Source: Diadema antillarum (taxonomy: Eukaryota). From it: a DNA stretch of 64,000 nucleotides. Below are positions 1-37,983 of the stretch, one piece after another; within the stretch, counting starts at the first letter, position 1; each line of letters begins with the position of its first letter. A program made the position numbers and the translations under genes. The DNA lies in contig NW_027270981.1 in the NCBI RefSeq assembly GCF_040938485.1, positions 1,054,001 through 1,118,000 on the forward strand, written 5' to 3'. The notes under the pieces were generated by a model. It worked only from the letters and a program-made list of their open reading frames with translations, was not told where the DNA came from and did no database searches.

Positions 1-131
1 GAAAATGCACATGAAAGTTCTTGTCTACACTTTACATATTGAATGTTAGAGGCAGCTCATGAATATTTAGTGCCGCGAAGAAGGCTTCAATTTGCGAAAA
101 TTTCGTGCCGTGAAAATATCATGCTTTACAG
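1..131. mobile_element. Right part of a Tc1/mariner (Tigger-like) MITE, TA-flanked
   Basis: Ends cgtgaaaatatcatgctttacag|TA, like the 35747 and 48125 elements; the paralogous site at ~8808 (tttagtgcatt) is empty. Confidence 0.6.
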
Positions 132-328
132 TAGTGCATTATCAAAAATGAAATAAACCTTTGCATACAGTGTGGTAGATGCTTCAGGAACAATAGGTTG
201 TTAGCCATGCAGCTATAGGAAGAGCAGAATACTTTTGCATAATTACTAATTTCATATGCACCTAAATTGCATAAATGACCCCGCGAAAAAACAAAACAAA
301 CAAAACAACAAAACAGCACGTCTTATAA

Positions 329-651
329 GTCCTGTTTACCTCTGGGAACAGTGATTTCAAAAATGTTCATGATTTCACATTTGATGCATATGTGCAGGTC
401 TGTTGTATCACATAACATTCTACCATATAAAATTTTTACAATAAGGCCTAAAATATGAGGAGATCTGGAAACATTTTTGTTAAATCTATTTTTCACATTT
501 TGTGTACTTAACAATACTTAACATCGATTATACGAATTCATTTTTTTTTTTTTTTTACAGTAGTTTCTGTTTCTAACTCACATTTTAGAACTATCTAAAG
601 CACTAATGCTGGATTTGTGTGTCATCTATGATACAAATGGTAAATTATGCC
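329..651. mobile_element. TTAA-target (Kolobok-like) MITE
   Basis: Absent from the paralog at ~9017 (gcacgtcttaagctt); ends gcc|TTAA; a second family member lies at 43975-44457. Confidence 0.7.
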
Positions 652-1431
652 TTAAAGCTTTTGATTTAAATCTAATTTCAGGGGTCATAAGCCATGCTTT
701 GCTGTAATCTTTAAAACGCATGAGCATTGCCAACCATGCACATGGTATTAAAAAAAATGACGTAATTCAAGAATGTCTTCAGCGGTCTCTTCAAAAAAGT
801 GGTCTTCTGTGGTCTTTCCACAGTCTTTCTGCAATCTCTCAATGAGCACTCAAGGGTTTTGCTAGTCGTATATTTATCTTCTGTTAGTCTTGCAAGAAGC
901 CACATTTTTGGAGGTCACTAAATATTATTGAGAGATCATTGAGGAACCATTGAAAGACTAATCTCTCAGAGATCTTGAATAAATCATAATCTCTAGAAGA
1001 TCTCAGGGAGTATGCCAGATGATCTTTCAGTGATCTCTCACAGTAGTCTTAGTGGTCTCTCAGTGAACTTTCAGCAATTTTCAAGGTCCCACGTAGATCT
1101 CTGAAAAATTTGCTAGCAAATTAATTTTTGATTCTTCAATAATCTTTTGAGGGTTCTTAGAACCATTCCACATAGACACTTTTTTTATCTGGTCTCGGAA
1201 ACAGGTTGAGGGATCTTGCCACTTTGGGTCTCTCACATCCCATTTATACAGGGCATCAAGAGCCCTCCAGGGGCACTCCTGATCCCCTCTGAGCTCTGTA
1301 CGAACTGTCAGTCACGACCTGGGGTGCTCTAAAATTATGACCCCCTCCCCTCTCCAGCCTTTAGGCTCAAGAGTGCTCCTGATGTGCCCTAACCTCTTGA
1401 TAAATGGTCACCAACATTTAGAGCACTTGAT

Positions 1432-1605
1432 CAGGGGGGGCATTTCATGAAGGAACATGTCAGATAAAATATCTGACAAGTCAATTATATCCGACAAGTT
1501 TTGAGAAATTCTTTAGTCAGATTGGCTGGTTTCTCTGAACTTGTCGGATATGACTGACTTGTCGGACATTTTATCCGACAAGTTCCTTCATGAAATGCCC
1601 CCCTG
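1432..1605. mobile_element. MITE with GGGGCATTTCATGAAG TIRs and CWG target (PIF/Harbinger-like)
   Basis: TIRs ggggcatttcatgaaggaac / gttccttcatgaaatgcccc; paralogous site at ~10228 (cactCTGgaagt) is empty; same family at 44061. Confidence 0.85.
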
Positions 1606-3313
1606 GAAGTGGTATTTGGTGCACCGGAAGTGTGCCCCTCTCAGCCGATTTGCATGTGGTCTGAGCAAGTGGTGATTCTCCGTCTATGAACAGATTTAGA
1701 GGGGCCTATTAAAGTCAAAGCGTTTCAGGAGCACTCCTCGGCCCAGCTTTGTGTATAAATGGGGTATAAGTGGCCTCTCAAGGGTTTGCTTTATGCAGAA
1801 TAGGGTCCCTCATTTATGTCACACAAGGGCTAAATAGAGGAAATACATAAAGTGACCATATTTTTGTCTTTCACGCTATTCCCAAAACTCAGCACATTGA
1901 TGCCAAAAAGAACATTTCTGGTAACAAGTAGGAACCAGTAAAATAAATTTATTCTTTAAACTGATATTGACACAGTTCAAGTTTAATGAACAAAACCAAT
2001 GATACATCTTACAGCTTCCATTCATATAATTTTAGATTTTTAAAAAGGATACATTCTACAATATGTACCCATGCAAATTTGATTCAAGCCTACATACAAT
2101 TATAGGCAGCAGGTATATATCATGGTGCACTCGTGTACTGCAGCTTTTGAAATATATTTGGCGACGTTTACCATTATTGTTTACATCAACATGCTCTTTG
2201 CTGACAAAATGCATAGTGAGTTGTGAAAGTGAAGATCTTGCATCGATTTTTGTGGGCATCAGGTAGTAGTTTATTAACTAATCCAGCATAGTAACTGATC
2301 CATCATAACCTCACATATACTAAAGTAGGTACTCAGACACATAATGCTCTATTACAATTCAGATAACGTTTAAGATGATGAATGTCATAATGATTTCAAG
2401 GTTTGCAGAGAAAAAAAAAATCGAGAAAAAAACAAACCCTCTCACATGTTGGTATTGTAGAGCTATTCCCATCAAGATCTATACATGTATTGTAACATGA
2501 GAATAGAGTACTAGTGCCCATTTCACATTACACCCTGTATTCAGGTCTCACAGATTAAAGTTGCACAATTAGCCCTGCTAATTTGGTCTGTGAGACTTGG
2601 CTGCAATGAAATTAGATATTTTGCAGGTATGATTGAACAGGTGAATGGCTTGCATGATAGTAGAAATAAGTATGACGAGGACGATTACTCGTCACCATTT
2701 ATCAAACATTATACATACAGAATGTTTCAAAGTACTTAACATTCCACAGCATGCAGTACATTGAACCACTTATTACCGTATGACATACATACATACTGAA
2801 TGTGGCATACTACGTCTTACAAATATACACATCTAATGTAATCAAGTAAGTTGTTCCAAATGTATGTATGCATAATCAACACCAATGTTTGTTGTTTTTT
2901 TTTTCAGTACAGATGACTGAAACTACTTGGATGAAAATATTTGTGAAGTAACTTTTTTTAAATGATTTTTTTTTTTTTTAATGATCCATCAGGCCACAGA
3001 GTATTCACATGCTGGTCTAGAAATATGCTGATATAAATATGTGTTCTATTTTTACCCTTTGAAATAATGTTGCTTAAAAGAAATAATTTTTCATATTTTG
3101 AATGATAGAAATCTGAAATTATTACTTTCAGTAGTACCAGCAAGCATTCAGAAATAAAATGAATTTGTATTTCTTGCTGATTGATGTCACTGAGGTCTCT
3201 ATGTCAAACTAAATCTCTAAAGTAGAAAGTGTGGACTTCCAGGGTGTTTTGACTTTGTTTGTCACTTCATTGAGTTTGTGCTTTCTCTAGATCTGTTCAT
3301 GTAATCTACTCAG

Positions 3314-3319
3314 TTTATT
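3314..3319 (-). promoter_or_regulatory. Candidate polyadenylation signal for TLR-A
   Basis: AATAAA on the minus strand ~205 nt after the stop; position only, no transcript evidence. Confidence 0.35.
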
Positions 3320-3524
3320 CAATGTAGCAAAAGACATGCTGTATTCATGCATGTGTAGTTTCCATTTTTTATTACATTAGTCAGAGTAAGTCAATGAAGT
3401 TGCTGTGTGGTGAAGATTCACCTTCAATTTGATAGGAATTTTCCAGGTTTTTCACCTATTGTACATAATCCTATTTGTCTATTACTAACACCAGAGATAC
3501 TGCAAATTAATTTAACTGTGTTCT

Positions 3525-6320
3525 CTATACAGGAATTGCATTGTTTATCACCTTGTTTGATCTGAAGTTCTTCTCGAGCTTGGCCCAAAACAAATCCTGT
3601 CTGTATTCATCTTCTTCCCATTCCAAGTACGGTCTGTTAGCGCTCAGGAAGAGCCGTACAAGATAGGGAAGTTGGTCGTCTTCAACATGCTCCTTGAAGA
3701 TCAGAATAACTTTGTCCAATTTGGTTTCATTGATATGTTCTAAGGCCAAGCGAATCTTGGTCATAAACCATTGCTCCTCCACCGACTCGTTGCTGATCAC
3801 AAGAGCAGTCTTGAAGCTGTTTTCCAGGGCATGATGGATAGCGTCTACTAAGTACATACCAATGTGAAGATAGTCGTCACCCCAGAGAATGCTTTCAAAC
3901 TGAGGAAATCTTTCTTCCACGGCTGGTCTCATGACATTGTTGACCCAGTCTTCATCCCCATCAGAGAACATGATGTTAAGCTGGTGCCTATAGTCCTCTG
4001 GTTGTTGATTGTCTTCCACTTCCTCATATCCCAAGATGGCTAGCTTCAGGAGATAGAGCCGGTAGCGAAACCACCAGCGCTTATAGTATACGACTATAGC
4101 CATATAACCCACAATGACAAGGACCAAGGAAACTGATACTATAAGAGTCACATTTACGCTGCAGAATTCTTCTGGATTAAAGAGTAGAAAAGGATGATTG
4201 ACTAAAGTTTCAAAGGATGATCTTGAGCAAATTGTGTTATTCTGTTGCATTAGGACAACATTGCTTAGCTCAACCCACTTTCTGAACCATGCTAAATCGC
4301 ATGTGCATGAGAGTGGGTTTTGTGATAAATCTAAGTGTATAGTGGTAGGAAATAATGTACCAGGAAATATGGTGCTGAGGTGATTGTCAGACAAAAATAG
4401 TTTAAAAAGATTAGGTGTGTCATTGAACAGTGTGAGTGGCAAAGACCGAACTGAACTCTTTTCAAAGAAAAGATTTCTGAGACTGTGGAGACCATACAGG
4501 GTATGTGCAGATGGCTCTTGAATTTGGTTTCCCCGGAGATACAATGTTGTAAGGGAAGTCAAATTTTGAAACAGTCCTGGTTTCAATATATTGATCTCAG
4601 AGTCAGAGAGATCCAGTGATGATAGGTTTCCCAGTGAACTGAAGGTGCCAGGTTCCAAGTTGTTCAGGGAATTTCCCCGCAGGTAAAGCCCCTGAAGCAC
4701 TGCTTGACCAGCAAACAAGGAATGGTTTGTTTTGTAATCAAACAAACTTTTGCTATCCAAATTGTTAAAACTTAAGCTTAGTTCTTGCAGTGATACAGCT
4801 CCAGTAAATTGATAAGTTGAATTCAGTGTAAGTTTTGTGTTTGACAGATCCAGTATTTTTAGATTTGTCATATCACGGAAAACTTCACTTAACAGAGAGG
4901 CGACTTCTGAGGTCAGATACAGCTCCTGCAGATGAGGTGTTCGTGCAAATGCAAATGGAGAATATCCTCCAATTTTGTTGTGAGACACATTTAGAACTTT
5001 GAGATTTTTTAGTCCCCATAACACACCATTAGGAAGTTTATCTAGACTGTTGAAAGAAATGTCTAGAGTGAGCAGAGTTTCCGTGGTCCAGGTTTTGTAT
5101 GTGAAGGAGAGAATCAGGTTATTGGAGAGATCAAGGTGTTGTATCTTAGGCAGCTGCATGAAGGAGCCAGGATCCAACATGATGATCTCATTGTGGGAAA
5201 TGTTCAAATTGAGGAGGTTTTCATTGCAGTGAAATGCACCCAGTGGGAGAGAAGAAATGTGATTTTCAGATATTTCCAGGCTCTGCAATGAATGGAGTCC
5301 ACAAAAAGATGTGTTTGCAATATTTGTGATCCTGTTCTTCTGTATGCTAAGACTTACTGTGTGATAGAAACCCCAAAATGCATAATGAGGGATATCAATG
5401 ATTCTATTGCCACTCAACTCAATTTTCAGTATGTGAGGAATGGCAACTTCATCACGTACAGACCTGTTAAGTGGAATTATTTCCTGCAGCAAAGTGCCAT
5501 ATAGTGACAGTTTCTTAATCTTTAAGTTACCCATAAATGCGAGCACCTCAAATTTGTTAATATGATTAACATCAAAGGAAACAAGATTAACAGTCGCAAG
5601 GTCTGAGAATACACCAGTTGTCACTGCAGTGATTTTGTTATAACTGAGGTCTAAAGCGTGCATGGAGTTGTTTTGTAGTGGAAAAAAAGCATGATGAGGA
5701 ATGGATTTGATATCATTCCTTGACAAGTTTATTTCAGATATTCTCTTCCACCCTGAGACTGACTGAAAGTCAAATGATTGTATTGAATTTTTCATTAAGA
5801 TTATAGCCTTTAGCTTTGATAAGTCTTTAATTGCAGTTAAAGGCACAGAAGTAAACAAATTACCGCCTAAATCTACACGATAGAGATTCTTATTAGAACG
5901 TAAAAGCCCAGGATGAACTTGTGCCAACTTATTTCCTGAAAGAGATAATATTTTGAGATGAATGAGAGGTGTGAAAGCAGCATTTTCAATATGAAAGATT
6001 GCATTCTTCCTCAAATTTAAGGTGATTAGATTCCAGAGGGATGCAAAGGAGTAATTTTGAAGTTGTGTTATAAGGTTGTATGATAAATCTAAAGTGATAG
6101 TCCTGTTCGGGAGGTCTTGGGGAACTGACTTCAGATGGCAATGATTGCAGTAGACCTTGATGCCTCGGCTGGTCTCATTATAGGAGCAGCAGTTGCGTTG
6201 TAGAGACATCGTCTGGTTTGGTGGGGAGGTAGCTGACATCGACAGTAGGAATACCACCCACAGCATCAGTAGAATGCAGCACAGAGCACACATTGAGGAG
6301 TGCATCCTTACGGCAGTCAT
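3525..6320 (-). CDS. Toll-like receptor TLR-A (single-exon; signal peptide, LRR-NT, ~20+ LRRs, LRR-CT, TM, TIR), divergent paralog
   Basis: 931-aa ORF with hydrophobic N-terminus, CC..C..C LRR-NT, many LxxLxLxxN repeats, NPLSCTC LRR-CT, TM VTLIVSVSLVLVIVGYMAIVVYY, and a sea-urchin-style TIR (QLNIMFSD..EDWV..SFKTALVISNES..LPYLVRLFL..QDLFW) ending NNAIPV. Family call from recognised motifs; no one-to-one vertebrate ortholog. Confidence 0.96.
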   Translation of the reverse strand: MTAVRMHSSMCALCCILLMLWVVFLLSMSATSPPNQTMSLQRNCCSYNETSRGIKVYCNHCHLKSVPQDLPNRTITLDLSYNLITQLQNYSFASLWNLITLNLRKNAIFHIENAAFTPLIHLKILSLSGNKLAQVHPGLLRSNKNLYRVDLGGNLFTSVPLTAIKDLSKLKAIILMKNSIQSFDFQSVSGWKRISEINLSRNDIKSIPHHAFFPLQNNSMHALDLSYNKITAVTTGVFSDLATVNLVSFDVNHINKFEVLAFMGNLKIKKLSLYGTLLQEIIPLNRSVRDEVAIPHILKIELSGNRIIDIPHYAFWGFYHTVSLSIQKNRITNIANTSFCGLHSLQSLEISENHISSLPLGAFHCNENLLNLNISHNEIIMLDPGSFMQLPKIQHLDLSNNLILSFTYKTWTTETLLTLDISFNSLDKLPNGVLWGLKNLKVLNVSHNKIGGYSPFAFARTPHLQELYLTSEVASLLSEVFRDMTNLKILDLSNTKLTLNSTYQFTGAVSLQELSLSFNNLDSKSLFDYKTNHSLFAGQAVLQGLYLRGNSLNNLEPGTFSSLGNLSSLDLSDSEINILKPGLFQNLTSLTTLYLRGNQIQEPSAHTLYGLHSLRNLFFEKSSVRSLPLTLFNDTPNLFKLFLSDNHLSTIFPGTLFPTTIHLDLSQNPLSCTCDLAWFRKWVELSNVVLMQQNNTICSRSSFETLVNHPFLLFNPEEFCSVNVTLIVSVSLVLVIVGYMAIVVYYKRWWFRYRLYLLKLAILGYEEVEDNQQPEDYRHQLNIMFSDGDEDWVNNVMRPAVEERFPQFESILWGDDYLHIGMYLVDAIHHALENSFKTALVISNESVEEQWFMTKIRLALEHINETKLDKVILIFKEHVEDDQLPYLVRLFLSANRPYLEWEEDEYRQDLFWAKLEKNFRSNKVINNAIPV

Positions 6321-8829
6321 GGTGCCCTCAAAATGGTATTACTTTAGCTTCCTGCAAAAATATGGCAGCACTATCAAACTCTGCAGGGTATTAAAGCAAG
6401 CTGTTGAATGTATGCAGTCTACAGGAATATCATCAGATTGCTGCTGCAGGAATTCACAGAACTGCAAATAGCACTATGTAGCTGCTTCCAGTTCTAGAGT
6501 GCATATATATTTCAAATGTCAATGAGTATATAGTCCCAGCAACATATTTTGCAATGACCTCTTGCAGTTATTAGCACATTTGCATATTCATTAGTGAGGA
6601 AAGATTGCTCCAGAAGACTGGAATATATTTGCAGATAGTATCTAGGCCTATGTAATATGCTCAGATTGCTGGTTGTGAGGTACAAAAGTGCCATCTAGTT
6701 CTTGAACAGTATCAAGTTGTGATATTCATATCTCAACTGTCAGTATCCCGTATTACCAAGCTAGTCCAACAATCACATGCTGTCCCAATGGTTGAAATGT
6801 CCTTATCTCAGTCTTGAAAGAATAAGTGTACAAGTGTTGTACTCACAGAAAGTTCACTTAAGTTGATCAGATGGCTCTCCTGTGACACCATGCATAAGGG
6901 CAATATGAGGTGGCTTTCTCGTTCACTGTATCCCAGTCTGTCTTGCACTAAAGATTGAAGCTTTAGGTTTTTGCGCTATGTGAGTCGAACTGGTATGAGC
7001 AGTTTTGTTTGCCATCATGCTGCTCCCTTCTGTCCAGCGAGAGGCAGAAACACTGTCCTTAAATTGGACCAGATGTGAAATGGAGGTCTAATTTCAGAGA
7101 AAGTAATGACTCATGCATGCAGATCGAAGATCCCACCACAGTTCTCTTCGCAAGGAGTAGGATGCACACTCCTCCTCACATACTGACGACTGATGTTCCA
7201 GACCCCTTGTAATTCATCACACCCGCAGGCGATCAGCAATGGCCAGCAAATGGTATAAATTCTTCACACAATGTGCCACAGGAATGAGTGCATAGGACCA
7301 TGTTTGTCTTTATGTCTTCAAGCTCGTTCCAGTTACCAGATGCAAAATGAAAAGCTCTAAGTAGCTGTGCATGCAGGAACAAATTGTAGGCCACGAGTTG
7401 CGATGATCTCGCACAGGAATTGACAGTGACAGTAATATTTTTGTAAGGTCCGTGATTGATGGTCCGTTGTCATGACTACAAGTTACACTGCATGTCTCAC
7501 TATTATGTCTCCTCTGGGGAGGTAGTCATTGTATGAAATAATTATAGGTGTAATTCTAGAATGTGTTCTCTAACACAGAAATGTAATTGGGCAGTCAGAG
7601 CAGATTCATAGCCATATAAATGATTTATGGGACTTTCAGTTTTTGGTAGAGGCAGGGCTGTAAACTGTTGCTTTGATATCTAATACCCGGTATGTATTCA
7701 ATGAAGATAACTTTGCGAATCCTGTGCTTTATTGATGGAGATGTATAATTTCATGAATACCATCAGGAGGAAAGTCTTGTAGTTCTACTGATTTAAAGAA
7801 GGGATGTGCAGATCACTTGACTCCACCAAGTGCATTTTCAGGCTCAAAATTCATATTTTAAACTTTGAATATGCTTGCAAAAATTTCTACCTAGTACCTA
7901 TACCAAGAAAGCTTTGATAGATTGCCAAGATAATCAATCATTTTGATTGTTTTGAAATCAAAAGTGTGGAATAATCTCAATCATAGCACACAACTTTATT
8001 ACTGAAGTGCCTTTCCAGTTCAATAGTGGCTAGGTATCAACTGTTACTAGTACATAATGAGTAAATCATGCCCTAGCAGTAGTACATCTACAATTTATTG
8101 CATTGCCTGCAGCAAACAGGCTGCATGCAATGCCCTCTCACATGATGGATAATGCTGTGGCCATTTATTAATCAATGCTAATGATTTTTATAAATCACAT
8201 AGCAACCATCATTGGGTATCATCCAAGATTGCAATACTTCAGACATACCTTTTATGGTAATATTTGCATTTTTGTCATTACCCAACTGAAATCCAGGGCG
8301 GTGAGTTGGCTCAGTTTATAGCATGTCTGCCACCACAGCCAAATGTTTGATTGCTTAGTCTTACTGAGCAGTGTTTTGTGTATTGAGAATAAGAGACAAA
8401 ACACTCTGTCCCTCGGATAAGACATACAATAAACTGGAGATCCCATGTGTAAGAGAGTCACTACTCATGCAGGTAAAAGATCTCACTTCATTCATCACAC
8501 AGAGCAGGGTGCATAGCCCAATATCAATTTCACTAATATGACATTGATATAATATGCAACCCAAGAAGGTACTTAACTTGAGACATTTTCAAGTGGAGCT
8601 GACACTTTGTACAGAGTGAAATTAATATTCTATTCAATTGATGTCAATAGCAAATGACTTGGAAACCAAATACAATCACAAGACTGAATCAAGCGTTGTT
8701 ATTTTTGCTATTGAACAATATGAAAATTATACCATCCGTATGTACAAGGTGTACATTTACATAGAATTAAACATGCATGTTTACTTACGTGTTGTTTATT
8801 TAAACCCAAATGTTTAGTGCATTTATGTT

Positions 8830-11800
8830 AAAAGTGAAATAAATCTTTATATACAGTGTGTAGATGCATCAGGAACAATAGATTGTTAGCCATGCAGCTA
8901 TGGGAGGAGCAGGATAATTATGCTTAATTACTTATTACATATATGCACCTAAATTGCATAAATGACCCCGCAAAAACAAACAAACCAACAACAAAGAAAC
9001 AAACAAAAAAGCACGTCTTAAGCTTTTGATTTAATATTTAATTTTGAGGAATCATAAGCCATGCTTTACTGTAATCTTTAAAATTCATGGGCATTGCCAA
9101 CCATGCACATGGTATAATGCAAACTATGGTAAAAAAAAAAAATGACATAATTCAAGAGAGTCATTAGCAGTCTCTTAAGAAAAGTGGTCTTGAGAGGTCT
9201 TTCCACAGATTTTCTGTGATCTGTCAATGAGCACTCAAGGGTTTAGCTAGTCTTATAATTATCTTCTGACAGTCTTACAAGAATAGCCACATTTTCGGAG
9301 GTCACTTAAGATTATTGAGAGATCATGGAGGTACCATTACTAATCTCTCAGAGATCTTGAATGATCTCTTGAAGATCTCAGGGAGTATGCCAGATAATCT
9401 TTCAACAATCTCTCATTAGTCTTATTGGTCTCTCAGTGAACTTTCAGCAATCTTTAAGGTCCTACATGGATCTCTTAGAAATTTGCTGGCAAATTTTTGG
9501 TCCTTCAATAGTCTTCTGAGGGTTTTTAGAACCATTCCAGTTGTAGTCTCGGAAACTGTTGAGGGATCTTGCCACTTTAGGTCTGTCACATCCCATTTAT
9601 TCAGGGCATCAAGAGCCCTCTAGGGGCACTCCTGATCCCCTCTGAGCTCTGTATGAACAGTAGGTGGGTCTTCATGAGCTCAAGCTTGAAGAATAGCGCA
9701 CTTATGGGGGATCAGAGAAATAAGCCTGAAGTCAGCTGAAATGTGCAATCGCGTCTTTACCAGCTTGAGCTTCAGGCATGGCACGGTCGGGTTTATAAGC
9801 TCAATGCTGGCGCGAACACACTCTGACCTGACTGCCTACATTCCAGCGTGGTGCGCAACGCATGCAGTGCCGATGTTTAAGCTCGAGCTGATGAAGACGC
9901 GTTAAGATTAGCATGCTATTTTGCAAATCAGCTGGCTGTTCTGCAATTAAATCCAAGATTGCTTTGGCTTATTTTCCGATCGGAATAGGTCACTATTTGG
10001 TGCAAAATTAGCGGGCTATTTTCTGATCAGGCTAATTCTTTGGATCAGAAATAGTGGGCTATTCTTCAAGCTCGAGCTGATGAAGACCCACCTAGTCAGT
10101 CATGACCGGGGGGTGCTCTAAAATTACGCCCCCTCCCCCCCCCCCCCCTCTCTAGCCTTTAGGCTCAGGAGCGCTCCTGATGTGCCCTGAGAACCTCTGG
10201 ATAAATGGTCACCAACATTCAGAACACTCTGGAAGTGGTATTTGGTGCACCTGAAGGTCACCATGCATGACATTTATGGTGTGCCCCTCTCAGCCGATTC
10301 GCATGTGGTCTGGGCAAGTGGTGATTCTCTGTCTATGAACAGATTAGGAGGGGCCTATTAAAGTCAAAGCGCTTCAGGAGCACTCCTCGGCCTAGCTTTG
10401 TGTATAAATGGGGTAGAAGTGGCCTCTCAAGGGTTTGCATTATGTGAAATGGGGTCCCTAATTTTTGTCATACATGCAAGGTCTAAATAGAGGAAATACA
10501 AGGAGTGACCATATTTTTGTAACGTTATTCGTTACTCCGAAATCTTAGCACATTGATGCCAAAAAGAACATTTCTGGTAACAAGTAGGAACCAGTAAAAT
10601 AAGTTTATTCTTTAAACCGATATTGAAGTTTATTCTTCAAACTGATATTGACACAGTTCTAGTTTAATCTAGAAAGCCAATGATACATCTTAGCAGCTTC
10701 CATTCGTATAATTTGAGATTTTTAAAAAGGGTACATTCTATAATATGTTCACATGCAAATTTGATTCAAGCCTACGTATACATACAATTATAGGCAGCAG
10801 GTATATATCATGGTGCACTCGTGTACTTTTGAAATATATTTGGTGACGTTTACCATTATTGTCTACATCAGCATGCTCTTTGCTGACAAAATGCGTAGTG
10901 GGATGTGAAAGTGAAGGTCTTGCGTAGATTTTTGTGGGCATCAGGTAAATTAGTAGTATTAACTTATCCAGCGTAACCTCGCATATATACTAGAGTAGGT
11001 ACTCACATAATGCTCTATTACAATTCAGATAACGTTTAAAATGATGAATGTCATAATGACTTCAAGGTTTGCAGAGAAAAAAAAATTGAGAAAAAAACCC
11101 TCTCACATGTTGGTATTATAGAGTTATTTTCATCAAGATCTATAATGTATCATGAGAATAGAGTACTAGTGCCCATTTCACATTACACCATGTATTCAGG
11201 TCTCACAGATTAAAGTTGCATAATCATCCCTGCTAATTTGGTCTATGAGACTTGGCTGCCATGAAATTAGAAATGTTGCAGGTATGATTGAACAGGTGAA
11301 CGTCTTGCATGATAGTAGAAATAATTATGACAATGACGATTCCTCATTACTATTTATCAAACATTATATATACAGAATGTTTCAAAGTACTTAACATTCA
11401 AACATGCAGTACATTGAACCAATTATTACCGTATGACATATGCATACTATATGTGGCATACTACATCTTACATACATATATACATCTAATGTGATCAAGT
11501 AAGTTGTTTCAAATGTATGTATGCATAATTGATACCAATGTTTTTTTTCTAGTACAGATGACTGAAACTACTTGGATGAAAAAATTTATGAAGTAATCTT
11601 TTTTTAATGTTTTTTTTTTTTGATGATCCATCGGCCACAGAGTATTTACATGCTGCTCTAGAAATATGCTCATATAAATATGTGTTCTATTTTTACCCTT
11701 TGAAATAATATTGCTAAAGAAAAAATTTTGAATGATAGAAATCTGAAATTATTACTTCGTAGTACCAGCAAGCATTCAAAAATAAAATTAATCTGTATTT

Positions 11801-17238: not shown

Positions 17239-17242
<4 letters not shown>

Positions 17243-26191: not shown

Positions 26192-26223
26192 GAGAGAGAG
26201 AGAGAGAGAGGGAGAGGGAAAGA
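26192..26223. repeat. (GA)n microsatellite ~1.2 kb upstream of TLR-C
   Basis: Paralogous position to 17243. Confidence 0.9.
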
Positions 26224-27316: not shown

Positions 27317-27723
27317 TTAGTGGCCTGACAATGAAATTTAATCCCTGAGGGCTATAGCTAGCGTTCAGCATTGCGTACATGATGTTGTATAATATGTTTA
27401 TTAGAATACAGATAAAACTAGAGAGATATTAAAACAATATAGATAATATTTCCTAGTTTATGATGAGTCATAGTAAGTGCTCATGGAGAACTTTGCTGTC
27501 TCAACCACCTGATGTATATTTTTAGACAAGTGATGGAGATGTCTGCCTAGATGTAAGACACTTAATGGCTGCAGTCTCCATGCTGCTGTATTACAATTGT
27601 ATCTCTTCCTTTATAGTACCTGGGATCAATAGAAATAAAATCAGAAGAAATACACTGAGTGACCATGTTTTTGTCTTTTATGCTGTTCCCAAAACTCAGC
27701 ACATTGATGCCAAAAAGAACATT

Positions 27724-28352
27724 CATGAGACAAATCTCTCGTTTGAAGAAGCTACACCCATGTAGACAATGCCAGTGTATATCTTGGCAATCAAGGACTT
27801 AAAAACCAAAGATATAAAACACCAGTTTCTTGACCCTGGCCTAATCTAAACATCAGTCACCGCCACAGGGGGGGGGGGGGGGGGGGGGGGCACCCGCGAG
27901 AGGAGGAGATTGTTTTGGTTTTAGCATGGGCTATGTAGCTCCATGGTGCGTGTGTGTGTCGGCAAACTCCTATAATGCTCTCCTTCTTATTCCTGTATTT
28001 TCATTATTTATGGGTCAAATTTTTCGTTCGAAATTTAAAACGTATGACCATAGAATTTCTCAGTAGAATATAAAATTTAAAACTTTAGAAAGAATAGAGA
28101 AAATTGAGTTCACTTTGAATGGTCTGCCACAGGCAGATATCCTTATCATGTTCTTACGTAATATGACAGCTGTTGCAGTCATTAAACCCTGGCTTGGCCT
28201 CCAGGTTTGCTACGCCTGAGTAGAAAGTTATTTTGCAATGGGCAAATACATATCCTCCCACTTCTCAAATGAGGACTCGTTAGGGGGGTATAGCACCCCA
28301 TCAGCTTCGTTTGCCAATGGGGTCTCGTCTCAAACGGGGGTTTGACGGCATG
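27724..28352. mobile_element. Degenerate TIR insertion, ~630 bp, with a G23 run at 27868-27890
   Basis: Interrupts aagaacatt|tctggtaa, which is contiguous in three paralogs; imperfect TIRs around caaa..cgtttga..cccat. Confidence 0.65.
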
Positions 28353-29021
28353 TCTGGTAATAAGTAGGACCCAGTAAAATAAGTTTATTCTTTAAACTGA
28401 TATTGAAGTTTATTCTTAAAACTGATATTGACACAGCTCAAGTGTAATGAACAAAAAAAAAAAAAAAAAAACCAATGATACATCTTTGCAGCTTCCATTC
28501 ATATAATTTTAGATTTTAAAAAGTATAGTATTCTACAATATGTACCCATGTAAATTGGATTCAAGCCTACATAGTATACAATTGTAGGCAGCAGATATGT
28601 ATCAGGGTGCACTTGTGTACCATGATATACAATGTATATTATTTGAATAAATATATTTGGTGACGTTTATCATTATTGTCTATGTCAACATGCTCTTTGT
28701 TGACAATATGTTGAGAGTCTTGAAAGTGAAGGTCTTGCATAAATTTTTGTGGGCATCAGGTGAATTAGTAGTTTTATCTAATCTAGCATAACCTCTATAC
28801 TAGAGAAGGTACTCACATAATGCTATATTACAATTCAGATAGTGTTTAAGATCGACGAATGTCATAATGAGTCCAAGGTTTGCAGAGAAAAAAATTGAGA
28901 AAAAATACTCTCACACGTTGATTTTATACAGCTATTTCCATCAAGATCTATATTGTTTCATGAGAATAGAAAACTAGTGCCCCATTTACATTACACTGTG
29001 TATTGAGGCCTCACAGATTAA

Positions 29022-29401
29022 AGGGGCTGTACAGTACTGGTTGAGGTGGGGATTCATGTTTTTTACATTCCTCAGTGAGATAATGAATAACCTCTTATGA
29101 AAATTGAAAGAGCATGTAATTTTAAGGATTCAACATTCATTTGATGAAAATTGATTTTCAAATGGCTGAGATATCCAAAAAAGTAATAATGATAAAAGAC
29201 TACAGGCCACAACTTTATTAGGATCTCTTTGTTTCACCTTGTTTTTGGATATCCCGGCCACTTCAAAACCGATTTTCATCAAATAAACTTTTGATACCCC
29301 TTAGAATTGCGCGCTCTTTGACATCTCACATAGTGGTTTCTGAATATCTCACAAAATGTTAAAAGCTAAATCCTCACCTCAACCAGAACTCTACACACCT
29401 C
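29022..29401. mobile_element. TTAA-target (Kolobok-like) MITE, 380 bp
   Basis: TTAA|aggggctgtacagtactggttgaggtggggatt ... aatcctcacctcaaccagaactctacacacctc|TTAA; single TTAA at paralogs ~2555 and ~11210. Confidence 0.88.
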
Positions 29402-30336
29402 TTAAAGTTTCAAAATTATCCTTGCTAATTTGGTCTGTGAGACTTGGCTGAAATGAAATCAGATGTTGCAGGTATGATTTAACAGGTGAATATCTTGCAT
29501 GATAATTATGACAATGGTGATTCCTCGTTACCATAGTTATCAAACATTATAGTATACATACAGAATGTTTCAAAGTGCTTAACATTCGGACATGCAGTAC
29601 ATTGAACCAATTATGACCGTATGACATATATATATGTGACATACTACATCTGAACACACAATGTGATAAAGCATAAGTTGTTCCAAATGTATGCGTGCAT
29701 AATTGACAGCAATGTTTTTTCTATCATGGATGACTGAAACTACTTGGTTCAAAATATTCATGGAGTAGCTTTTTTTTAATTATTTTCTTTTTGATGATTC
29801 ATCAGGCCACAAGTATTTACATGCTGATCATATAGAAATGTGTTCTATTTTTGCCCTTTGAAATAATGGTGCTTGAAAAAAATAATTTTTCGTATTTTGA
29901 ATGATAGAAATCTTAAATTATTACTTTCAGTATTACCAGCAAGCATTCACAAATAAAATAAATCTGTATTTCATGTTGGTTGATATCACTTTAATAGGTC
30001 TCTATGTCAAACTAAATCTCTCAAATAGAAACTGTCAAATCTTCTGTATTAGCAGTTCCTTTGATACAACTTTTTCCTTGGCCATCCTTTGTCATGCAGT
30101 CACAATTTTGATACAATTTCAAAGTAGCCAGACACAGCATGCATTCTGTTTAACAAGTTTGTTGCAGTATACAGCATCAAAACATAATACTTCACTGAGC
30201 AAAGTAGTTTCACTATTCTATGGAAATTAAAGAATATGAAGAAAGATTTAAAAAAGAACAACAAAATTTATTGACAGCATGCAGTGTCAGGAATGTTGGT
30301 CAAGCAAATGATTGATTGCCTGACTGGCACAGTAAA

Positions 30337-30523
30337 CAGTGGACTCCCATTCCAACAAAGTCCTTGGTACCAGCATTTTTCTTTTGTTATATCGAAACTT
30401 CGTTATAACCGAACAATTAAACAATAGAAATACATGGAGCGGATAATGTTGCGGCCTGAATTTTTACTTTGTTGTAACCAGAATTTCGTTATAACCGTGT
30501 TCGTCATAATGGGGAGTGCACTG
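30337..30523. mobile_element. Tc1/mariner (Tigger-like) MITE, duplicated along with its unit
   Basis: Near-identical to 21241-21426 at the same position in the unit. Confidence 0.8.
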
Positions 30524-31293
30524 TACATGCTCTCATACAGAGTGATGTGTAGATGATATGCTCTTGTTAATTACATATTATCCACACCTGTTCCATTTCC
30601 TTGCTATACACTCTTCCTCATGAATTTTCTTGTAAGTACATGTTGGACAAGTACAAATATACATGCTCAATAGCTGATGGTCATAACAGAAAAAAGAAAA
30701 TGGTTATGGTGAAATCAATTATTTAAGATTGAACCTTTGCAATGATATAAATTTCAGACAATCAGAATTCAGCGTTCAAGACCAGTTATACATTAGTGTT
30801 TTCCCCCGTAATTTCAAAACAAGACACTTCATACAACAGAGTTCAGGCTTGGTTTACTGATTCTAAAGAAGATCCCTTCTTAATTGCGCATTTGCAGCAG
30901 AATTATCTTGGTGTTACATACCGCAGTAATTTGTTGGCACTCATCTTGTTGGCAAAAAAAAGAAAATGGTAAAAAATACTGCAGTAATTCATTTGGTACT
31001 CCTATCATTCAAGAAATATGTTTCTCTTCCTGATAAACATTGCGCATGCCTGTTTCTACTGTGGGAAAAGACACAAATGAATATGTCACATGAGAGCTGT
31101 ACAATTGGTGCTATTACATTACATAATTCACACTCACATGTATCTCAAATTATGTGCATTTTGTACAAAGTTTGAAATATCACAGCATGTAAGTACCTCA
31201 TTATCTCATGATGTATTTCGCATTGTATCTGCCATACATCAGTGTGTGTCCTTTGCTTTCCCTTGCAAAGACATTTCCTTTCCAGCTCAGAAA

Positions 31294-34071
31294 TTAGCAT
31301 GATTCAATTGGTATGTAATTGAATTCCTCTCGTACAAGCCTGTGCCGAAATTGCTCCCAGAACAAATCTTGCCTGTCTGTATTCTTAGCCCACATCAGGG
31401 TAGCTCTGTTGGCATTCAGGAGAAGTCGTACCAGATAGGGGAGTTGATCGTCGGAGATTTCCTCAAGGAAAATCAGTGTGACTCTATCCAATCTGGTCTC
31501 GTTAAGGTGTTCCAGAGCCATACGCACCTTGGACATGAACCATGTGTCTGCCACCGATTGGTTACTTAGCACGAGAAGGGTCTTGTAGCTGATTTCCATG
31601 GCATTGTATAGGGCGTCCACGTAGTGCATGCCAGCATTCAGATAGTTGTCAGCCCACAGAATGTTTGTGAAGTATGGAAACCTCTCTTCCATAGCAGGCT
31701 TCATGGTGCCATTGATCCATTCCGCATCAGCATCGTTGAACATGACATTGAGCTGGTATTGGTAGTTGTCGGCATTGTGCTCCTCAAGGTCCTCATATCC
31801 GCGAATGGCCATTTTCATGAGGCAGACCTTGTTCCTCAGCCACCATCGCTTGCGATAAACAAGCACACAGAGGAGTGACAGTGCTATGAGTACCAGAGAT
31901 GTCACAATTGTCACGACAGGACTCACAATGCAAAGCTCCTCAGGATGAAACTGCAGAAGGGGTTTGTTGGCAGTACCCATCGTGGATGTCCTTTCACAAA
32001 CAGTCTTGTTAGCATGTATAAGTGCAATGTTATTTGTGTCCAGCAGAGTTCTGAACCATGTCAACTCACAGGAGCAGATAATTGGATTTTTGGACAAATC
32101 AATTTCCACATTTCTGGGGAATACTGTGCCTGGAAGCACAGTACTCACATGATTCTGTGACATAAATATTTTTGAAAGATTAGGTGTGCTGTTGAACAGT
32201 GTGACTGGAATAGACTGTATGAAATTGCTTTGAACAAAAAGAGAATGAAGTTGTTGCAGGCCACAAAGTGTTTGTGTGTTCAATTCTATGAGTTGGTTGC
32301 CATGCAGACGTAAACTTGATAGAAGAGTCAGGCTGTTGAACAGTTTTGCTCTGACAACTGTAATTTTAGAATTAGAAATATCCAATACCTTGAGTTTAGT
32401 CAGTGGATCAAATGTACCAGGTTTCAATTTGTTTAAGAAGTTGTTGCCTTGCAAGAAGAGTCGTTCCAAAGATTTCAGGCCCAAGAACAAGGAAGATCGT
32501 TTGGAAATGTCAAACAGATGCATACTTTGCAGGTTGGTGAAGCTCATGTCAAGCATTATGAGGGATGCAGTACCACGAAATTGATCTGTTGAATTCATAG
32601 TCAGAGGTGAATGGGATAGATTCAGTTTTTGCAGTTTGTCCAAGGTGCAAAAGTCTTCATGTAGATGCAGATTTTTCTCATATGAAAGAATCAGTTCTTT
32701 CATCTTCCGTGTGCTGGCAAAAGCTGAATTAATGTCAGATTCAATATCATTGTTAGACATGTTAAGATACTGCAAATGAGAAAGTTTCCTGAATAGATTT
32801 TTTGTTAGTCTTGTCATTTTGTTGCAGCAAAGGTCAAGATTGACAAGGGATGGCATAAAAGTGAACTTGTCTAGACTGTTTTCTAATGAGTTGTAAGACA
32901 GGTTCAGATGGAGTAATGAACTCAATCCCTTAAAAGAAGTAGAATGTAGTCTCATTATCTTGTTGTAAGATAGCAGCAGTTCAAGGAGATGTTTATTGCA
33001 GTGAAAGGCAAAATCTGGCAGAAATATGATTTGATTATGTGATAGGTCAAGAACCTGCAAATCATCTAGTGAACAGAAAGATGTATTTTGGATACTGAAA
33101 ACTTTATTTTCCCTTATAATGAGAGTTTGCGTCCAATTCAGTCCCAAAAATGCAAACTCAGGAATTTTCTGAATAAAATTGTCTGTCAAATCTATGATCT
33201 CGATGTTTGGAAAACTGAAATTGTATGCTGATGAATTAACAGGGATTATTTCCTTAATTGAAGAGTTTTGTAGAGATAACTCAGTGATATATGCTTTGCC
33301 CATGAATGCCAGGACCTCAAGCTTTGTAATGTTAATCCCATGGAGCAAAATGCTGCTGACAAAAGGAAGTCCAGAGAATACCATAGGTCCTAGAAGGTGA
33401 AGCCGCTTGTTTCTGCTCAGGACTAAAGATGACAATAAACAATTCTTCAGAGGTAGAAAGTCATGCTGTTGGATAGATGACAGATTGTTTTGCGACAAAT
33501 CGATGGATATATTGTCCCATCTAGATAAAGGATCAAAATGGAGAGACTGTATCCTGTTCGCTGAAAGAGTAAGTTGTGTCAGCTTTGGTGACCCTGCAAA
33601 GGCTGCACTGGGCGTTGAAGTCAAATTCGTCTTTGTGAGAGGAAGAGTTTCAAGATTGATTTTTGCATGAAACCATCCACCTTGAAATTCAGTTAACCTG
33701 TTGTATGATAAATTCAGTACTTGAAGATGTTCAAGAGAGGAGAATGTGCCATTTTCAATTTGGATGAGCCGGTTATATGCCACATTTAGCCTTAGAAGAT
33801 TTCCATGACCATGAAAGGAATTATGGAAAAGTTCTGATATCCAGTTGTGTGATAGATTCAAAATGACAGTGTCATTTGGAAGGTCCCCAGGAACTGTTGT
33901 CAAGTTTCGTCTTGTGCAATCAGCACAAATACCTTCTCCACTGTTACTGAGACAACAGTGATCTTCGCTGAGCACATGTTGCTTTCTTGTTCCGATCAGT
34001 TCTGATGAAAATATGCCTCCTATCCATAGAAATGTGAAGAGGTAGAGTGCAGCGCAAACTAGGGTATGCAT
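31294..34071 (-). CDS. Toll-like receptor TLR-D (single-exon LRR-TM-TIR), B/C mosaic ectodomain
   Basis: 925-aa ORF with the same architecture; alternating tracts are near-identical to TLR-B or TLR-C. Confidence 0.96.
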   Translation of the reverse strand: MHTLVCAALYLFTFLWIGGIFSSELIGTRKQHVLSEDHCCLSNSGEGICADCTRRNLTTVPGDLPNDTVILNLSHNWISELFHNSFHGHGNLLRLNVAYNRLIQIENGTFSSLEHLQVLNLSYNRLTEFQGGWFHAKINLETLPLTKTNLTSTPSAAFAGSPKLTQLTLSANRIQSLHFDPLSRWDNISIDLSQNNLSSIQQHDFLPLKNCLLSSLVLSRNKRLHLLGPMVFSGLPFVSSILLHGINITKLEVLAFMGKAYITELSLQNSSIKEIIPVNSSAYNFSFPNIEIIDLTDNFIQKIPEFAFLGLNWTQTLIIRENKVFSIQNTSFCSLDDLQVLDLSHNQIIFLPDFAFHCNKHLLELLLSYNKIMRLHSTSFKGLSSLLHLNLSYNSLENSLDKFTFMPSLVNLDLCCNKMTRLTKNLFRKLSHLQYLNMSNNDIESDINSAFASTRKMKELILSYEKNLHLHEDFCTLDKLQKLNLSHSPLTMNSTDQFRGTASLIMLDMSFTNLQSMHLFDISKRSSLFLGLKSLERLFLQGNNFLNKLKPGTFDPLTKLKVLDISNSKITVVRAKLFNSLTLLSSLRLHGNQLIELNTQTLCGLQQLHSLFVQSNFIQSIPVTLFNSTPNLSKIFMSQNHVSTVLPGTVFPRNVEIDLSKNPIICSCELTWFRTLLDTNNIALIHANKTVCERTSTMGTANKPLLQFHPEELCIVSPVVTIVTSLVLIALSLLCVLVYRKRWWLRNKVCLMKMAIRGYEDLEEHNADNYQYQLNVMFNDADAEWINGTMKPAMEERFPYFTNILWADNYLNAGMHYVDALYNAMEISYKTLLVLSNQSVADTWFMSKVRMALEHLNETRLDRVTLIFLEEISDDQLPYLVRLLLNANRATLMWAKNTDRQDLFWEQFRHRLVREEFNYIPIESC

Positions 34072-35236
34072 TGTGGGCTCCTATTCAGTCATCAACGCAT
34101 AAAGGATCACTTCAAAGCTTGGCAAGTGTCAGTACTCCCGGAATGAACGGTGAAACACTTTATCTTTACAAAGATGGAACTGGTCATTGAAGGGAGTTAC
34201 TACCCAAAGTGGTGACAAACACTAAAAAGATGCACTTGGAAGAATATATGTGAGAAAGTAAATTGTCTTCCTCTTCTGTGATTTACCAGGATAGTTGGTG
34301 CACCAATTTTGCTGATCTCGGCAAGCATGATTTTGATCTTGAATTAGTGCATCTCAGGGTAACCGATGAGTCCTTCTTTATCTAAAGAGTTGATGTAGCA
34401 AGTAGAGAAATCCTTTGCACACAGTATGTGAAAAGAGTCAAACAACTTCTCTCTTGTGGTGGCTGTAGCGACTGCAATGACTTGCTGTGGCATGCTCCCC
34501 GTGTGCCTGTCTGCTTTTAAAACAGAAACATCATTGAGTGGAGAAATAGGGGCAGACTGTTTCCTTTGTTTAATAACTTGCATGTGATCTGATCACTTTA
34601 TGAGAACTTGTGTACGTGTGTACGTGCACTTTAATTGCTTCACTGGTAGTTTTGTTACAGTGTGATCATTATAGGCTTCCTCTCCACAGTATAGGCATAC
34701 ATTGTGAACATGTTACTGACAATAGGAATGATTGTTTCTGAGATGTAATGAGTGCAGAGTTGCCAAACAATACGATTTCGTAGTATTTAGTATGATAAAC
34801 AGAGTGAAATTTGATAGTACAATAATTGCCTCTTGAAAGTAGGACTTTTCATCATTAAAAAAAAAAAATGAAGCCAATATAAACTGCATAAAATTGCAGA
34901 AAACCGTTTCTTCACATAGAAAGATGAACTACTGAATTCCTGCAACCCCTACAAAAATGTTAAATGACGAACGTAAATGGGCAGGAAATATGCAGATGCT
35001 TTACAATTTGCTCATCAAGTGATGGGCTAGTGGTAGTGTCAAGATTTCATGAAAATCTGATTTTCGTATCAAAAATTTGATTATTTTTTAGGATATCCCA
35101 TCTGTTTTTGTTTTTGTTTTAATGGCAAGAAGTTAGCATATCTGTGAGTGGTATACATGCCTTTTGTAGGCTCGATACCATCCATCAATGTGTCCATCAA
35201 TCCATCATGTGTGTGTCTTGTTGTTGTTGTTTTTTT

Positions 35237-35262
35237 GAGAGAGAGAGAGAAAGAAAGAGAGA
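35237..35262. repeat. (GA)n microsatellite ~1.2 kb upstream of TLR-D
   Basis: Paralogous position to 17243. Confidence 0.9.
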
Positions 35263-35746
35263 TCTGAACATTGGTTGATGCATTTTAATTGTAAGATTTA
35301 TTGGTTCTGTAGGAGGATGTTTTAAAAGATATATTATGCCCGCATATCTTGTTTCATCAGTACAGAGCAATAATGTTGTGCCATCTTCTGATTGGTTTCA
35401 CTTTTGTAAGTGTATGATTGCAACACAATTACCACGTGAAAGAAGGCTATGCCACCGCTGTTGTCTAGTGGTATTGCTTGTTCCACACTCTTTGATGACT
35501 AAGAAACTGTTTCCTCTCAGTGAGAGCTAGAAATAATCAGGAACTTTGTGTGCTCACAGGTAATAGAATAATGTGATATATGAGGATATGTTAGTTTTTT
35601 ATTTCCTCTTCAAAATGACTGTATTCCTTTATTCATTAATTTTTAAATAATAACAGCAATGATATGAAACGATTGTGTAGTGCTTTTTGTATACATTTGT
35701 TTGTCTGTTTGTTTGTTTTTTTGGGGGGGAGGGGGTATTTTGCATA

Positions 35747-35946
35747 CTGTACAAGTGGATATTTTCGCGCGACTAATTTTTCACGATCGGTGGGGTAAGA
35801 AGAGTTTCGCGTGTTTTTAATTCCGCGGAATCAAGACATCAACTACTGGAACATATGGCGAGCAAAAATATTCGCGTGTTTTTATTTTTGTGCTAGTTTC
35901 GGGTTGCGCGAAAATTTCAACACCGCGAAAATTTCCACTTTTACAG
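35747..35946. mobile_element. Tc1/mariner (Tigger-like) MITE, TA TSD
   Basis: TA|ctgtacaagtggatattttcgcg ... cgcgaaaatttccacttttacag|TA; paralogs at ~17738 and ~26681 are empty (gcaTAttgtt). Confidence 0.88.
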
Positions 35947-36111
35947 TATTGTTAACTGAATCCCTATAGGAAACAGAAAATAAAGTTTTTTCAATATACC
36001 CATATCAAGGATCTACACAAACTTTTTCTTTTGGTAGCCGACAATGAATTTAATGGCTGAGGCCACAGCTAATGTTCAGCCTTGCCTATATACAATGTAC
36101 GTATGTGTGTA

Positions 36112-36557
36112 CAGTATGTCCAAAAAAAAATTACAATCAGATTTTCGAATTGATAACACCCAATGTGATTGACCTGTCTAAATGCTACTTCAGGGTCATA
36201 AAATATAACATCTTAGCTCTATTTTGCAGAAAACCCCATTCAATTTGGTTAAGCGGTCACAGAGAGATGTAGTTACTTGTAAAGCATGTCATGAGTCTGA
36301 TTCTTCCAATTTTAGCACTTAGATGCTCGTGTGTGTGAATACAATAGACAGAACTTGGAAGGAAGAGATTCCTGACATCCTCTACAAAATTCCTCATTTC
36401 TCTTTGACCACTGAAGCAAATCGAATGGGGTTTTCTGTAAGATGTGGGCAATAAGTTGTAGTTTTATATCCTGAAATTATATTTAGATTGATTCACTATT
36501 TTTAAAGATATCATTGCGGAGGGTCCCGTTGTAATTTTTTTTTGGGGGGACATACTG
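36112..36557. mobile_element. Tc1/mariner-like MITE, TA TSD, 446 bp
   Basis: TA|cagtatgtccaaaaaaaaattacaa ... ttgtaatttttttttgggggacatactg|TA, plus internal inverted repeats; absent from the other units. Confidence 0.82.
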
Positions 36558-37877
36558 TATTAAAATACAGATACAACCAGAGAGATAGTATGAGTATCAT
36601 ATAGTTTATTGTGAGTCATAGTAAGTGATCGTTGAGAACTTTGCTGTCTCAAGCACCTGTCATATTTTTAGACCAGTGATGGGATATGTCTGCCTAGATG
36701 TAAGTCATCTGATGGCTATAGTCTTCATGCTGCTATATGACAATTGTATCTCTTCCTTAGTGCCTGAAATTTGAGCACAACTGTCATATAAAGGCAAACA
36801 ATATAAGTTAGGAGTAGAGGTATCAGTAATCAGTTTAATCTACAAAAGGCCCTTGAGACTTCGTAATCTGTGTGGCGACAATAAAATGCCTCCTCAAAAG
36901 GGCAGACCCACATGGAATTACACCGCTGATAATCCTGAAAGGCTTTCATTAGACAGAGAACCTATCCCCTACCGTTATTAAAGGATTGTGCATTTTAATC
37001 TACTCGAGCGCACCTGATATTTGCCTCACAGTGAGTTGTACTGAAGTGTCACTTTTGCAAAATACCCTTGCGAAGTCAGTGACAGAGTAGGCACATGTAC
37101 AGTTGTACTTCTGAGTTTTGTGCCACACACTTTGCTTTATGTAACATCTTGGAAGAGTGCTAGGGCAAGCACCAATTTGTGTGTAGTGAGAAGGGGAAGA
37201 TTCTTCGTTAGTAAGGTAAGAATGCTCCATAGGTATTGACATTCCATCCACACAGAATGTCCTAAACTGTAGCATCCGAGTGTGTTGTTTGAAGTCAGCC
37301 GTTATTACCAGGGTTTGTAATATGGCTTAGCCAAGATACAAAGAAGGGTCATGTAAACTAAAGACATGTAACTTGCCATCTATAATTCATATGTGTGTGT
37401 ATAATGTGTTTGTGTATATGTGTGTACAAATGTGTTTTTCTTTCTATTATCACACAATAAACCATTCTTCATCACTTGATCCAAAAAAGAGAAACTACCT
37501 AAATGTAACTCCCAATTATAAAGGTTGTAGACTTTCTCTATGATAAAGTCTTAGCTTTAGTTCCTTGTACATTGTACTTAGATGCAGTATTACAAACTTG
37601 TATTGAAACTAAGAAATATTCTTAATTAATTTCAAAAATATTCCTCTTCTTCATATGAATTCAAGCAAGCAAAAAACTCTTGTACTTTTTAAAACATGTA
37701 CAACCCTTTTGCTCCTATATTCCTTAAGATTGTTTTTGTTTTTTACTGATTTCAATTGTATATTTCCCTTGTTTTCTGAAATGAAATGCGTCAACAATTT
37801 CTTATTTCTCATCATTAGAGACAGTATGGGGATTAAAAGTGTTTTCTTTTTTGTTGTTGTTGAATTGCTCTCGACAG

Positions 37878-37983
37878 CAAGCCGACTGGTATGCTGAGAG
37901 GACACAACGCTCCAATCTTCTCCCTCTTCATAGCACCAAACGAGAACAGGATCTACAGTATCTCACAGGACAAAACTGTCAAG
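37878..37983 (+). CDS. WD40 gene exon a (xKPTGMLRGHNAPIFSLFIAPNENRIYSISQDKTVK)
   Basis: acag acceptor, AAG/gtaaag donor; starts in phase 2 and has no start codon. Confidence 0.9.

Follow-up and report, generated by a model that had tools for sequence, protein, structure and literature searches.

Ten antisense Toll-like receptor genes between exons 11 and 12 of the CFAP337 gene of Diadema antillarum

In the present study, we analysed a 64-kb stretch of the Diadema antillarum genome (contig NW_027270981.1, called C93 below; C93:1054001-1118000, plus strand), hereafter the window, in which two kinds of genes lie on opposite strands. The left part holds four Toll-like receptor (TLR) genes on the minus strand, and the right part holds exons of a plus-strand WD40 gene that we assigned to CFAP337. 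The search span comprised the window and the 200 kb to its left, neither of which contains N; the whole assembly comprises 1.75 Gb in 2,963 contigs. The CFAP337 exons were mapped by tblastn using the orthologues of Lytechinus variegatus, Strongylocentrotus purpuratus, Apostichopus japonicus, Ptychodera flava and Antedon mediterranea. The gene model consists of exon lengths, phases and junction codons, and the exons were handled singly rather than as a joined protein. Contig coordinates carry the contig name; all other positions are those of the window, whose features are as follows.

1..37877, plus strand: the 3' 37.9 kb of CFAP337 intron 11 (both splice sites placed by comparison with orthologues)
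3525..6320, minus strand: TLR-A (T7), type I, 931 aa, intact, single coding exon (open reading frame, LRR_8, TIR)
13272..16049, minus strand: TLR-B (T8), type II, 925 aa, intact (open reading frame, LRR_8, TIR)
22210..24984, minus strand: TLR-C (T9), type II, 924 aa, intact (open reading frame, LRR_8, TIR)
31294..34071, minus strand: TLR-D (T10), type II, 925 aa, intact, closest of all the TLRs to exon 12 (open reading frame, LRR_8, TIR)
37878..37983, plus strand: CFAP337 exon 12 (106 nt, WD40 repeat, after the giant phase-2 intron)
42142..42293, plus strand: CFAP337 exon 13
46376..46478, plus strand: CFAP337 exon 14
47097..47283, plus strand: CFAP337 exon 15 (WD40)
47935..48095, plus strand: CFAP337 exon 16
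49520..49682, plus strand: CFAP337 exon 17 (WD40)
50259..50351, plus strand: CFAP337 exon 18
50611..50669, plus strand: CFAP337 exon 19
51899..51977, plus strand: CFAP337 exon 20
53194..53265, plus strand: CFAP337 exon 21
53938..53977, plus strand: CFAP337 exon 22 (40-nt micro-exon, GSWRGHIQSIT)
54638..54726, plus strand: CFAP337 exon 23 (WD40)
55277..55530, plus strand: CFAP337 exon 24
56399..56505, plus strand: CFAP337 exon 25
57278..57431, plus strand: CFAP337 exon 26, the last coding exon

The CFAP337 gene of D. antillarum, read from the plus strand, comprises 26 exons spread over about 130.6 kb (C93:980861-1111431). Examined exon by exon, all of them are joined by GT-AG introns and are free of stops in frame, and together they amount to 3,354 nt, corresponding to 1,117 aa and the stop codon. 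Exons 1-11 were located at C93:980861-1001154 on the plus strand, 52.8-73.1 kb left of the window. According to the tblastn results, residues 2-513 of the S. purpuratus protein matched C93:980837-1001152 colinearly on the plus strand, and residues 514-1130 matched 37876-57428 of the window. The orthologues of L. variegatus, A. japonicus, P. flava and A. mediterranea were likewise colinear on the plus strand of C93, and nothing from the orthologues mapped between the block of exons 1-11 and that of exons 12-26. An earlier reading made from the window alone (the sequence-only reading) had expected the 5' part of the WD40 gene to lie further left, and the leftward extension thus located it on the same strand and contig. 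An apparent additional match past exon 11 was ungapped extension noise with stops and was rejected as a pseudo-exon. The window contains 15 of the exons (12-26), separated by 14 introns of 259-4,158 bp, which agreed with the earlier estimate of about 0.26-4.2 kb, and the last coding exon ends in TAG at 57429-57431. The start of exon 12 corresponds to residue 401 of 1,015 in L. variegatus and 514 of 1,130 in S. purpuratus, so the expectation that proteins of this family extend several hundred residues further toward the N-terminus was correct.

Exon 12 (37878-37983) had been taken for an internal, phase-2 exon, and its splice sites and its split codon with exon 11 bore this out. The AG acceptor at 37876-37877 follows a pyrimidine-rich tract, and a GT donor stands at 37984. 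Since the first base of exon 12 completes a codon begun upstream, the intron before it is a phase-2 intron. Exon 11 ends in ...GTT CCG AG, followed by gtatag, and exon 12, preceded by cag, starts with C AAG CCG; the codon shared by the two exons is therefore AGC, which encodes Ser. The exon 11/12 join reads NPYVPSKPTGMLRGH (NPYVPSKPTG), the same as in S. purpuratus, L. variegatus, A. japonicus and P. flava, and A. mediterranea carries Val instead of the junction Ser. Exon 12 itself reads KPTGMLRGHNAPIF... and gave a Pfam WD40 match (E 6.8e-5). It holds an in-frame Met, yet the orthologue sequence extends upstream of that Met.

Intron 11 occupies C93:1001155-1091877 (90,723 bp) and begins 52,845 bases left of the window. 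The other 24 introns of the gene measure 259-5,547 bp, so that intron 11 is about 16 times the next largest. The only open reading frames (ORFs) of at least 300 aa in this intron are those of ten minus-strand TLRs (C93:1003442-1088080). All ten lie wholly between the consecutive exons 11 and 12, and the TLR loci of the second haplotype contig (C1322) lie in the same way. The intron has grown to about 91 kb because these ten antisense genes sit in it. The sequence-only reading had placed an array of four TLRs in one intron of more than 37.8 kb; the single giant intron was confirmed, and both its size and its gene content proved to have been understated. Its statement that 1-37877 holds no WD-like exon also stood, as tblastn with four full-length orthologues detected no CFAP337-like exon in window 1-37875 and, in particular, no upstream exon at 34-37.9 kb. 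The four intact minus-strand TLRs with duplicated flanks were recovered as ORFs with LRR_8 and TIR matches, lying in direct repeats of 3.8-5.2 kb with 85-89% identity that carry each TLR ORF and its flanks well past the ORF ends. Repetition within the window extends to 68% of the non-ORF bases of 1-37877, and a unique segment of 2.1 kb (35.75-37.88 kb) lies upstream of exon 12. Collectively, these results indicated that exons 12-26 very probably belong to one intact CFAP337 gene whose intron 11 holds ten intact antisense TLR genes.

Each of the ten TLRs in intron 11 is one uninterrupted open frame of 919-945 aa. In the four window TLRs, 9-10 LRR_8 stretches were found in each, and the C-terminal TIR_2/TIR matches fell just below the Pfam cut-offs. 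The C-terminal 200 aa of TLR-D matched the solved TIR domains of TLR6, TLR10, TLR1 and TLR2 with E values of 1e-8 to 1e-9. A crude hydrophobicity scan showed that every one of the ten proteins has one transmembrane stretch, 19-23 aa long and located around residues 712-738, and it detected an N-terminal hydrophobic leader in seven of the ten (three of the four in the window). With an LRR ectodomain, one transmembrane segment, a TIR domain and an uninterrupted coding sequence, these genes accord with the single-cysteine-cluster type of echinoid TLR. Two types could be distinguished, namely seven type I TLRs with 72-91% mutual identity and three type II TLRs with 80-85%, the identity between types being 43-46%. 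In genome-wide searches, the nearest relatives of the type II TLRs were those of type I, and the type I TLRs were related about equally to type II and to arrays on contigs C32, C711 and C28.

By its sequence, the plus-strand WD40 gene is identified as the CFAP337 orthologue, a member of the CFAP337/WDY/WDR49/WDR95 group with an EF-hand and WD40 repeats. Residues 2-1130 of the S. purpuratus protein (XP_030836544.1) aligned in order, with 47-97% identity per exon and more than 70% for most exons. A word search with a Lytechinus pictus model returned full-length orthologues of 1,015-1,130 aa, all of which carry EF-hand and WD40 Pfam families. The relatives in L. variegatus (1,015 aa) and S. purpuratus (1,130 aa) are named 'WD repeat-containing protein on Y chromosome-like', those in Ptychodera, Antedon and Apostichopus 'cilia- and flagella-associated protein 337-like', and the vertebrate relatives are WDR49, WDR64 and WDR95. 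The sequence-only reading had named a WDR95/WDR49-family host; the group was right, and CFAP337 is the better name. When single exons were compared with Pfam, exon 3 matched EF-hand_1 at 26.0 bits (cut-off 25.4), exon 4 gave a weak EF-hand_7 continuation, and exons 11, 12, 15, 17 and 23 matched WD40, whose repeats are expected to form two beta-propellers in this family. A search of a representative library with one WD40 exon returned mostly multi-repeat WD40 proteins, the sole true relative being the L. pictus model. Chains of the CFAP337 family are present in solved axoneme entries (WDR64 in 9fqr and an 'EF hand protein' in 8tid), and in Tetrahymena CFAP337 adjoins CCDC96/113 and contacts inner dynein d (bioRxiv 10.1101/2023.05.31.543107). 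Compared with its family, the D. antillarum protein shows no difference, having the same length, the N-terminal EF-hand and the WD40 repeats. What sets it apart is confined to the gene structure, in which one intron exceeds its counterparts in other echinoderms 17-37 times in length.

Viewed within the window alone, the gene lacks a start codon and the N-terminal 40% of the protein, as would a 5'-truncated duplicate, that is, a pseudogene whose functional copy lies elsewhere. A whole-genome search located CFAP337 only on C93 and on its haplotype partner C1322, and the other matches were paralogues of 35-47% identity. Since each haplotype carries this locus once, the 5' part missing from the window is not at another place in the genome. 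All 15 window exons are intact, and the 5' exons follow in order upstream. These results made a truncated copy hardly conceivable.

The second haplotype bears directly on whether the array was wrongly joined between two halves of CFAP337 during assembly. Such an error could be suspected because the assembly is an unpurged, repeat-rich draft that retains both haplotypes and measures 1.73 Gb for a genome of about 0.7 Gb, and the TLR array is itself repetitive. On C1322, CFAP337 lies on the minus strand; its intron 11 extends from exon 11, at about 423.0 kb, down to exon 12, at 335.6-335.7 kb, and thus measures about 87.3 kb. According to the search coordinates, from which the TLR content of this haplotype was read, the intron holds nine TLR loci, two of them apparently broken, and all nine are on the plus strand, opposite to the host gene. 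The two separately assembled contigs therefore agree in order and orientation, and their intron lengths differ (90.7 kb with ten TLR loci and about 87.3 kb with nine). In addition, an independent chromosome-level assembly of Diadema setosum places TLRs beside exon 12 and inside the gene span, and the window and the 200 kb upstream of it are free of N. An assembly artefact was accordingly considered very improbable.

Of the two apparently broken loci on C1322, one is the TLR-D allele and the other a type I copy. At C1322:339513-342288, the TLR-D allele is apparently broken, with residues 1-326 and 317-925 in different frames and a TAA inside. A RefSeq D. antillarum 'toll-like receptor 4' of 553 aa, identical to part of TLR-D at 552 of 553 positions, starts at Met373, as expected from the broken TLR-D allele. 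At C1322:410736-412904, a type I TLR is truncated to residues 211-931 and carries two stops; therefore, the haplotypes differ in TLR number and intactness within the intron.

In D. setosum (OZ188196.1), two loci around TLR-D-like and TLR-C-like proteins were examined, in which CFAP337 exons 13 and 12 are followed, in this order, by four or more antisense TLRs. In the public annotation of this species, both of these loci fall inside an opposite-strand gene whose product has an EF-hand and WD40 repeats, and whose length of 1,117 aa equals that derived for CFAP337 of D. antillarum. Where the intron DNA is unique, the two Diadema species share about 94-98% identity. Counted from exon 12, the best matches of the TLRs at OZ188196.1:22455328-22504376 are TLR-D (88%), TLR-B (93%), TLR-C (97%) and TLR-A (94%), as against the order D, C, B, A in D. 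antillarum. Divergence is greater in the TLR unit that borders exon 12 (88%) than in the adjoining unique DNA (94-98%), which suggests that turnover or gene conversion may have occurred since the species split.

We further considered whether exons 1-11, which would then encode the EF-hand and first propeller, and exons 12-26 might form two transcription units, the second with a promoter within 35.75-37.88 kb and a start perhaps at the Met of exon 12. This gene fission would accord with the in-frame ATG in exon 12 and with an intron of 90.7 kb, about 16 times the next largest in the gene. Older L. pictus models are also cut at this intron, into a 401-aa N-terminal model and a low-quality 968-aa C-terminal model starting MAPPC-KPTGM. 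A pattern search of the window found no MAPPC-type first exon, however, and this candidate for a start near exon 12 was rejected, its source model being of low quality and internally duplicated. Between the Diadema species, the identity around exon 12 does not exceed that of unique DNA elsewhere in the intron (about 94-98%), and an internal promoter proposed on such grounds was rejected as well. Moreover, both splice sites are intact and fit each other in phase, the D. setosum product is annotated as a single 1,117-aa protein across the TLR loci, and the newer L. pictus model and the L. variegatus model are single 1,015-aa proteins. Based on these results, fission of the gene appeared quite unlikely, and one CFAP337 gene interrupted by the TLR array was retained as the best explanation.

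Several observations weigh against this explanation. A search for Diadema transcript-derived fragments across the exon 11/12 junction found none, and the best match (83%) was genomic. The exon 11 donor (AG|GTATAG) is only moderately near the consensus. The D. setosum gene model may be partly homology-driven, and the D. setosum array was seen from the exon 12 side, the exon 11 end lying beyond the stretch seen. The genes flanking CFAP337 in S. purpuratus (a RING gene and GEMIN8) were not recovered around the D. antillarum gene; thus the orthology rests on sequence identity and locus uniqueness. In the window, positions 57432-64000, downstream of the CFAP337 stop, showed no similarity to GEMIN8, which follows CFAP337 in S. 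purpuratus.

The intron homologous to intron 11, which precedes KPTGMLRGH, was measured in three other echinoderm sequences.

S. purpuratus: 5,385 bp (whole gene 37.9 kb, no nested gene called)
ENA echinoid contig of 10.9 kb: about 5.0 kb
Apostichopus japonicus (sea cucumber): 2,433 bp

No TLR similarity was detected in the homologous intron of S. purpuratus, the ENA echinoid contig or A. japonicus. The simplest reading of these sequences is that TLRs entered and expanded in this intron on the way to Diadema; to assume an ancient array that the other lineages lost would be less parsimonious. The earlier proposal that the array expanded in place accords with these TLR-free introns of 2.4-5.4 kb. 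In L. pictus, the older models split CFAP337 at the same intron into products of 401, 391 and 968 aa, and residues 1-343 occur twice in the C-terminal model. In L. pictus too, then, this intron may be large, duplicated or badly assembled.

From the arrangement of the locus, we infer how it may have arisen and how it would be expressed. On the line of descent to Diadema, a TLR would have entered this intron when it still had its small ancestral size (about 2-5 kb) and would then have multiplied there by unequal crossing-over, with a copy number that still differs between haplotypes. The uniform TLR orientation would need no selection because tandem duplication copies orientation. Unequal exchange inside the array would alter only the intron length, and exchange reaching past the array would delete host exons. 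Production of the CFAP337 mRNA would require transcription across about 130.6 kb, including the whole array, followed by splicing that joins exons 11 and 12. Each TLR presumably has a promoter of its own and is transcribed separately from the opposite strand, and because the TLRs lie on that strand, their polyadenylation and splice signals would be absent from the host pre-mRNA. It is also conceivable, though improbable, that the nesting is not neutral. In that case, CFAP337 transcription, expected to be strong in testis and ciliated cells, might run through the array and silence the TLRs outside immune cells, or transcription-associated recombination in the germline might speed the turnover of the array.

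Some further open frames were noted in the search span. A low-complexity repeat (IYLSIYLS-like) at 41700-42140, just upstream of exon 13, is open in all three plus frames, and its ORFs of 151-153 aa are not genes. On the minus strand, a frame of 1,780 aa lies at C93:887434-892773, 166 kb left of the window, and two adjoining frames of 379 and 313 aa lie at C93:969867-971905.

Clusters of genes nested in introns are already known, and the Diadema case is one more, already implicit in the D. setosum annotation. In insects, paralogue clusters in one host intron have been reported for TipE/Teh in CG18675 and for GMC oxidoreductases in flotillin-2 (PMC3240667). Like those clusters, the Diadema array groups several paralogues in the same intron of a widely conserved host gene to which they are unrelated. 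In both cases, the nesting is of single-lineage origin and has been kept in more than one species, and the length of the host gene depends strongly on what is nested in it. Unlike them, the Diadema guests are fast-evolving immune receptors, ten genes of near-equal length whose copy number is polymorphic between haplotypes, and the arrangement has so far been seen only in one genus. The vertebrate LRRTM genes, nested antisense in alpha-catenin introns (PMC3933685), are likewise leucine-rich-repeat (LRR) transmembrane genes lying antisense in an intron of a conserved host. That case involves one gene per host intron in an ancient, stable pairing across paralogous hosts, whereas in Diadema a tandem array has expanded in place. 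Echinoid TLRs have been reported to form tandem arrays with lineage-specific expansion (Buckley & Rast 2012, PMC3367398). The Diadema genes resemble these families in having a single coding exon, about 21-25 LRRs, a transmembrane segment, a TIR domain and tandem clustering, and they differ in that the whole array lies inside one CFAP337 intron. In a term search of that paper's text, 'nested' was absent and 'intron' was used only for introns within TLR genes. In two Diadema genome papers, the words 'nested' and 'intron' were absent, and Toll-like receptors were mentioned only generally.

For genome annotation, the locus is a reminder that gene predictors can split such hosts at a giant intron, as in the older L. 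pictus models. It also provides a dated natural example of a 17-37-fold intron expansion, present in two Diadema species and absent from S. purpuratus, the echinoid contig and the sea cucumber. Ongoing change is visible, as the haplotypes of one animal differ in TLR loci and intron length. The arrangement would amount to a new kind of biology only if the expression of host and guests proved to be coupled. D. antillarum suffers repeated mass die-offs, and the locus offers a well-defined polymorphic TLR array for genotyping. In summary, the CFAP337 locus shows where a fast-turnover immune array can grow without harming a conserved gene, namely in an intron and on the opposite strand.

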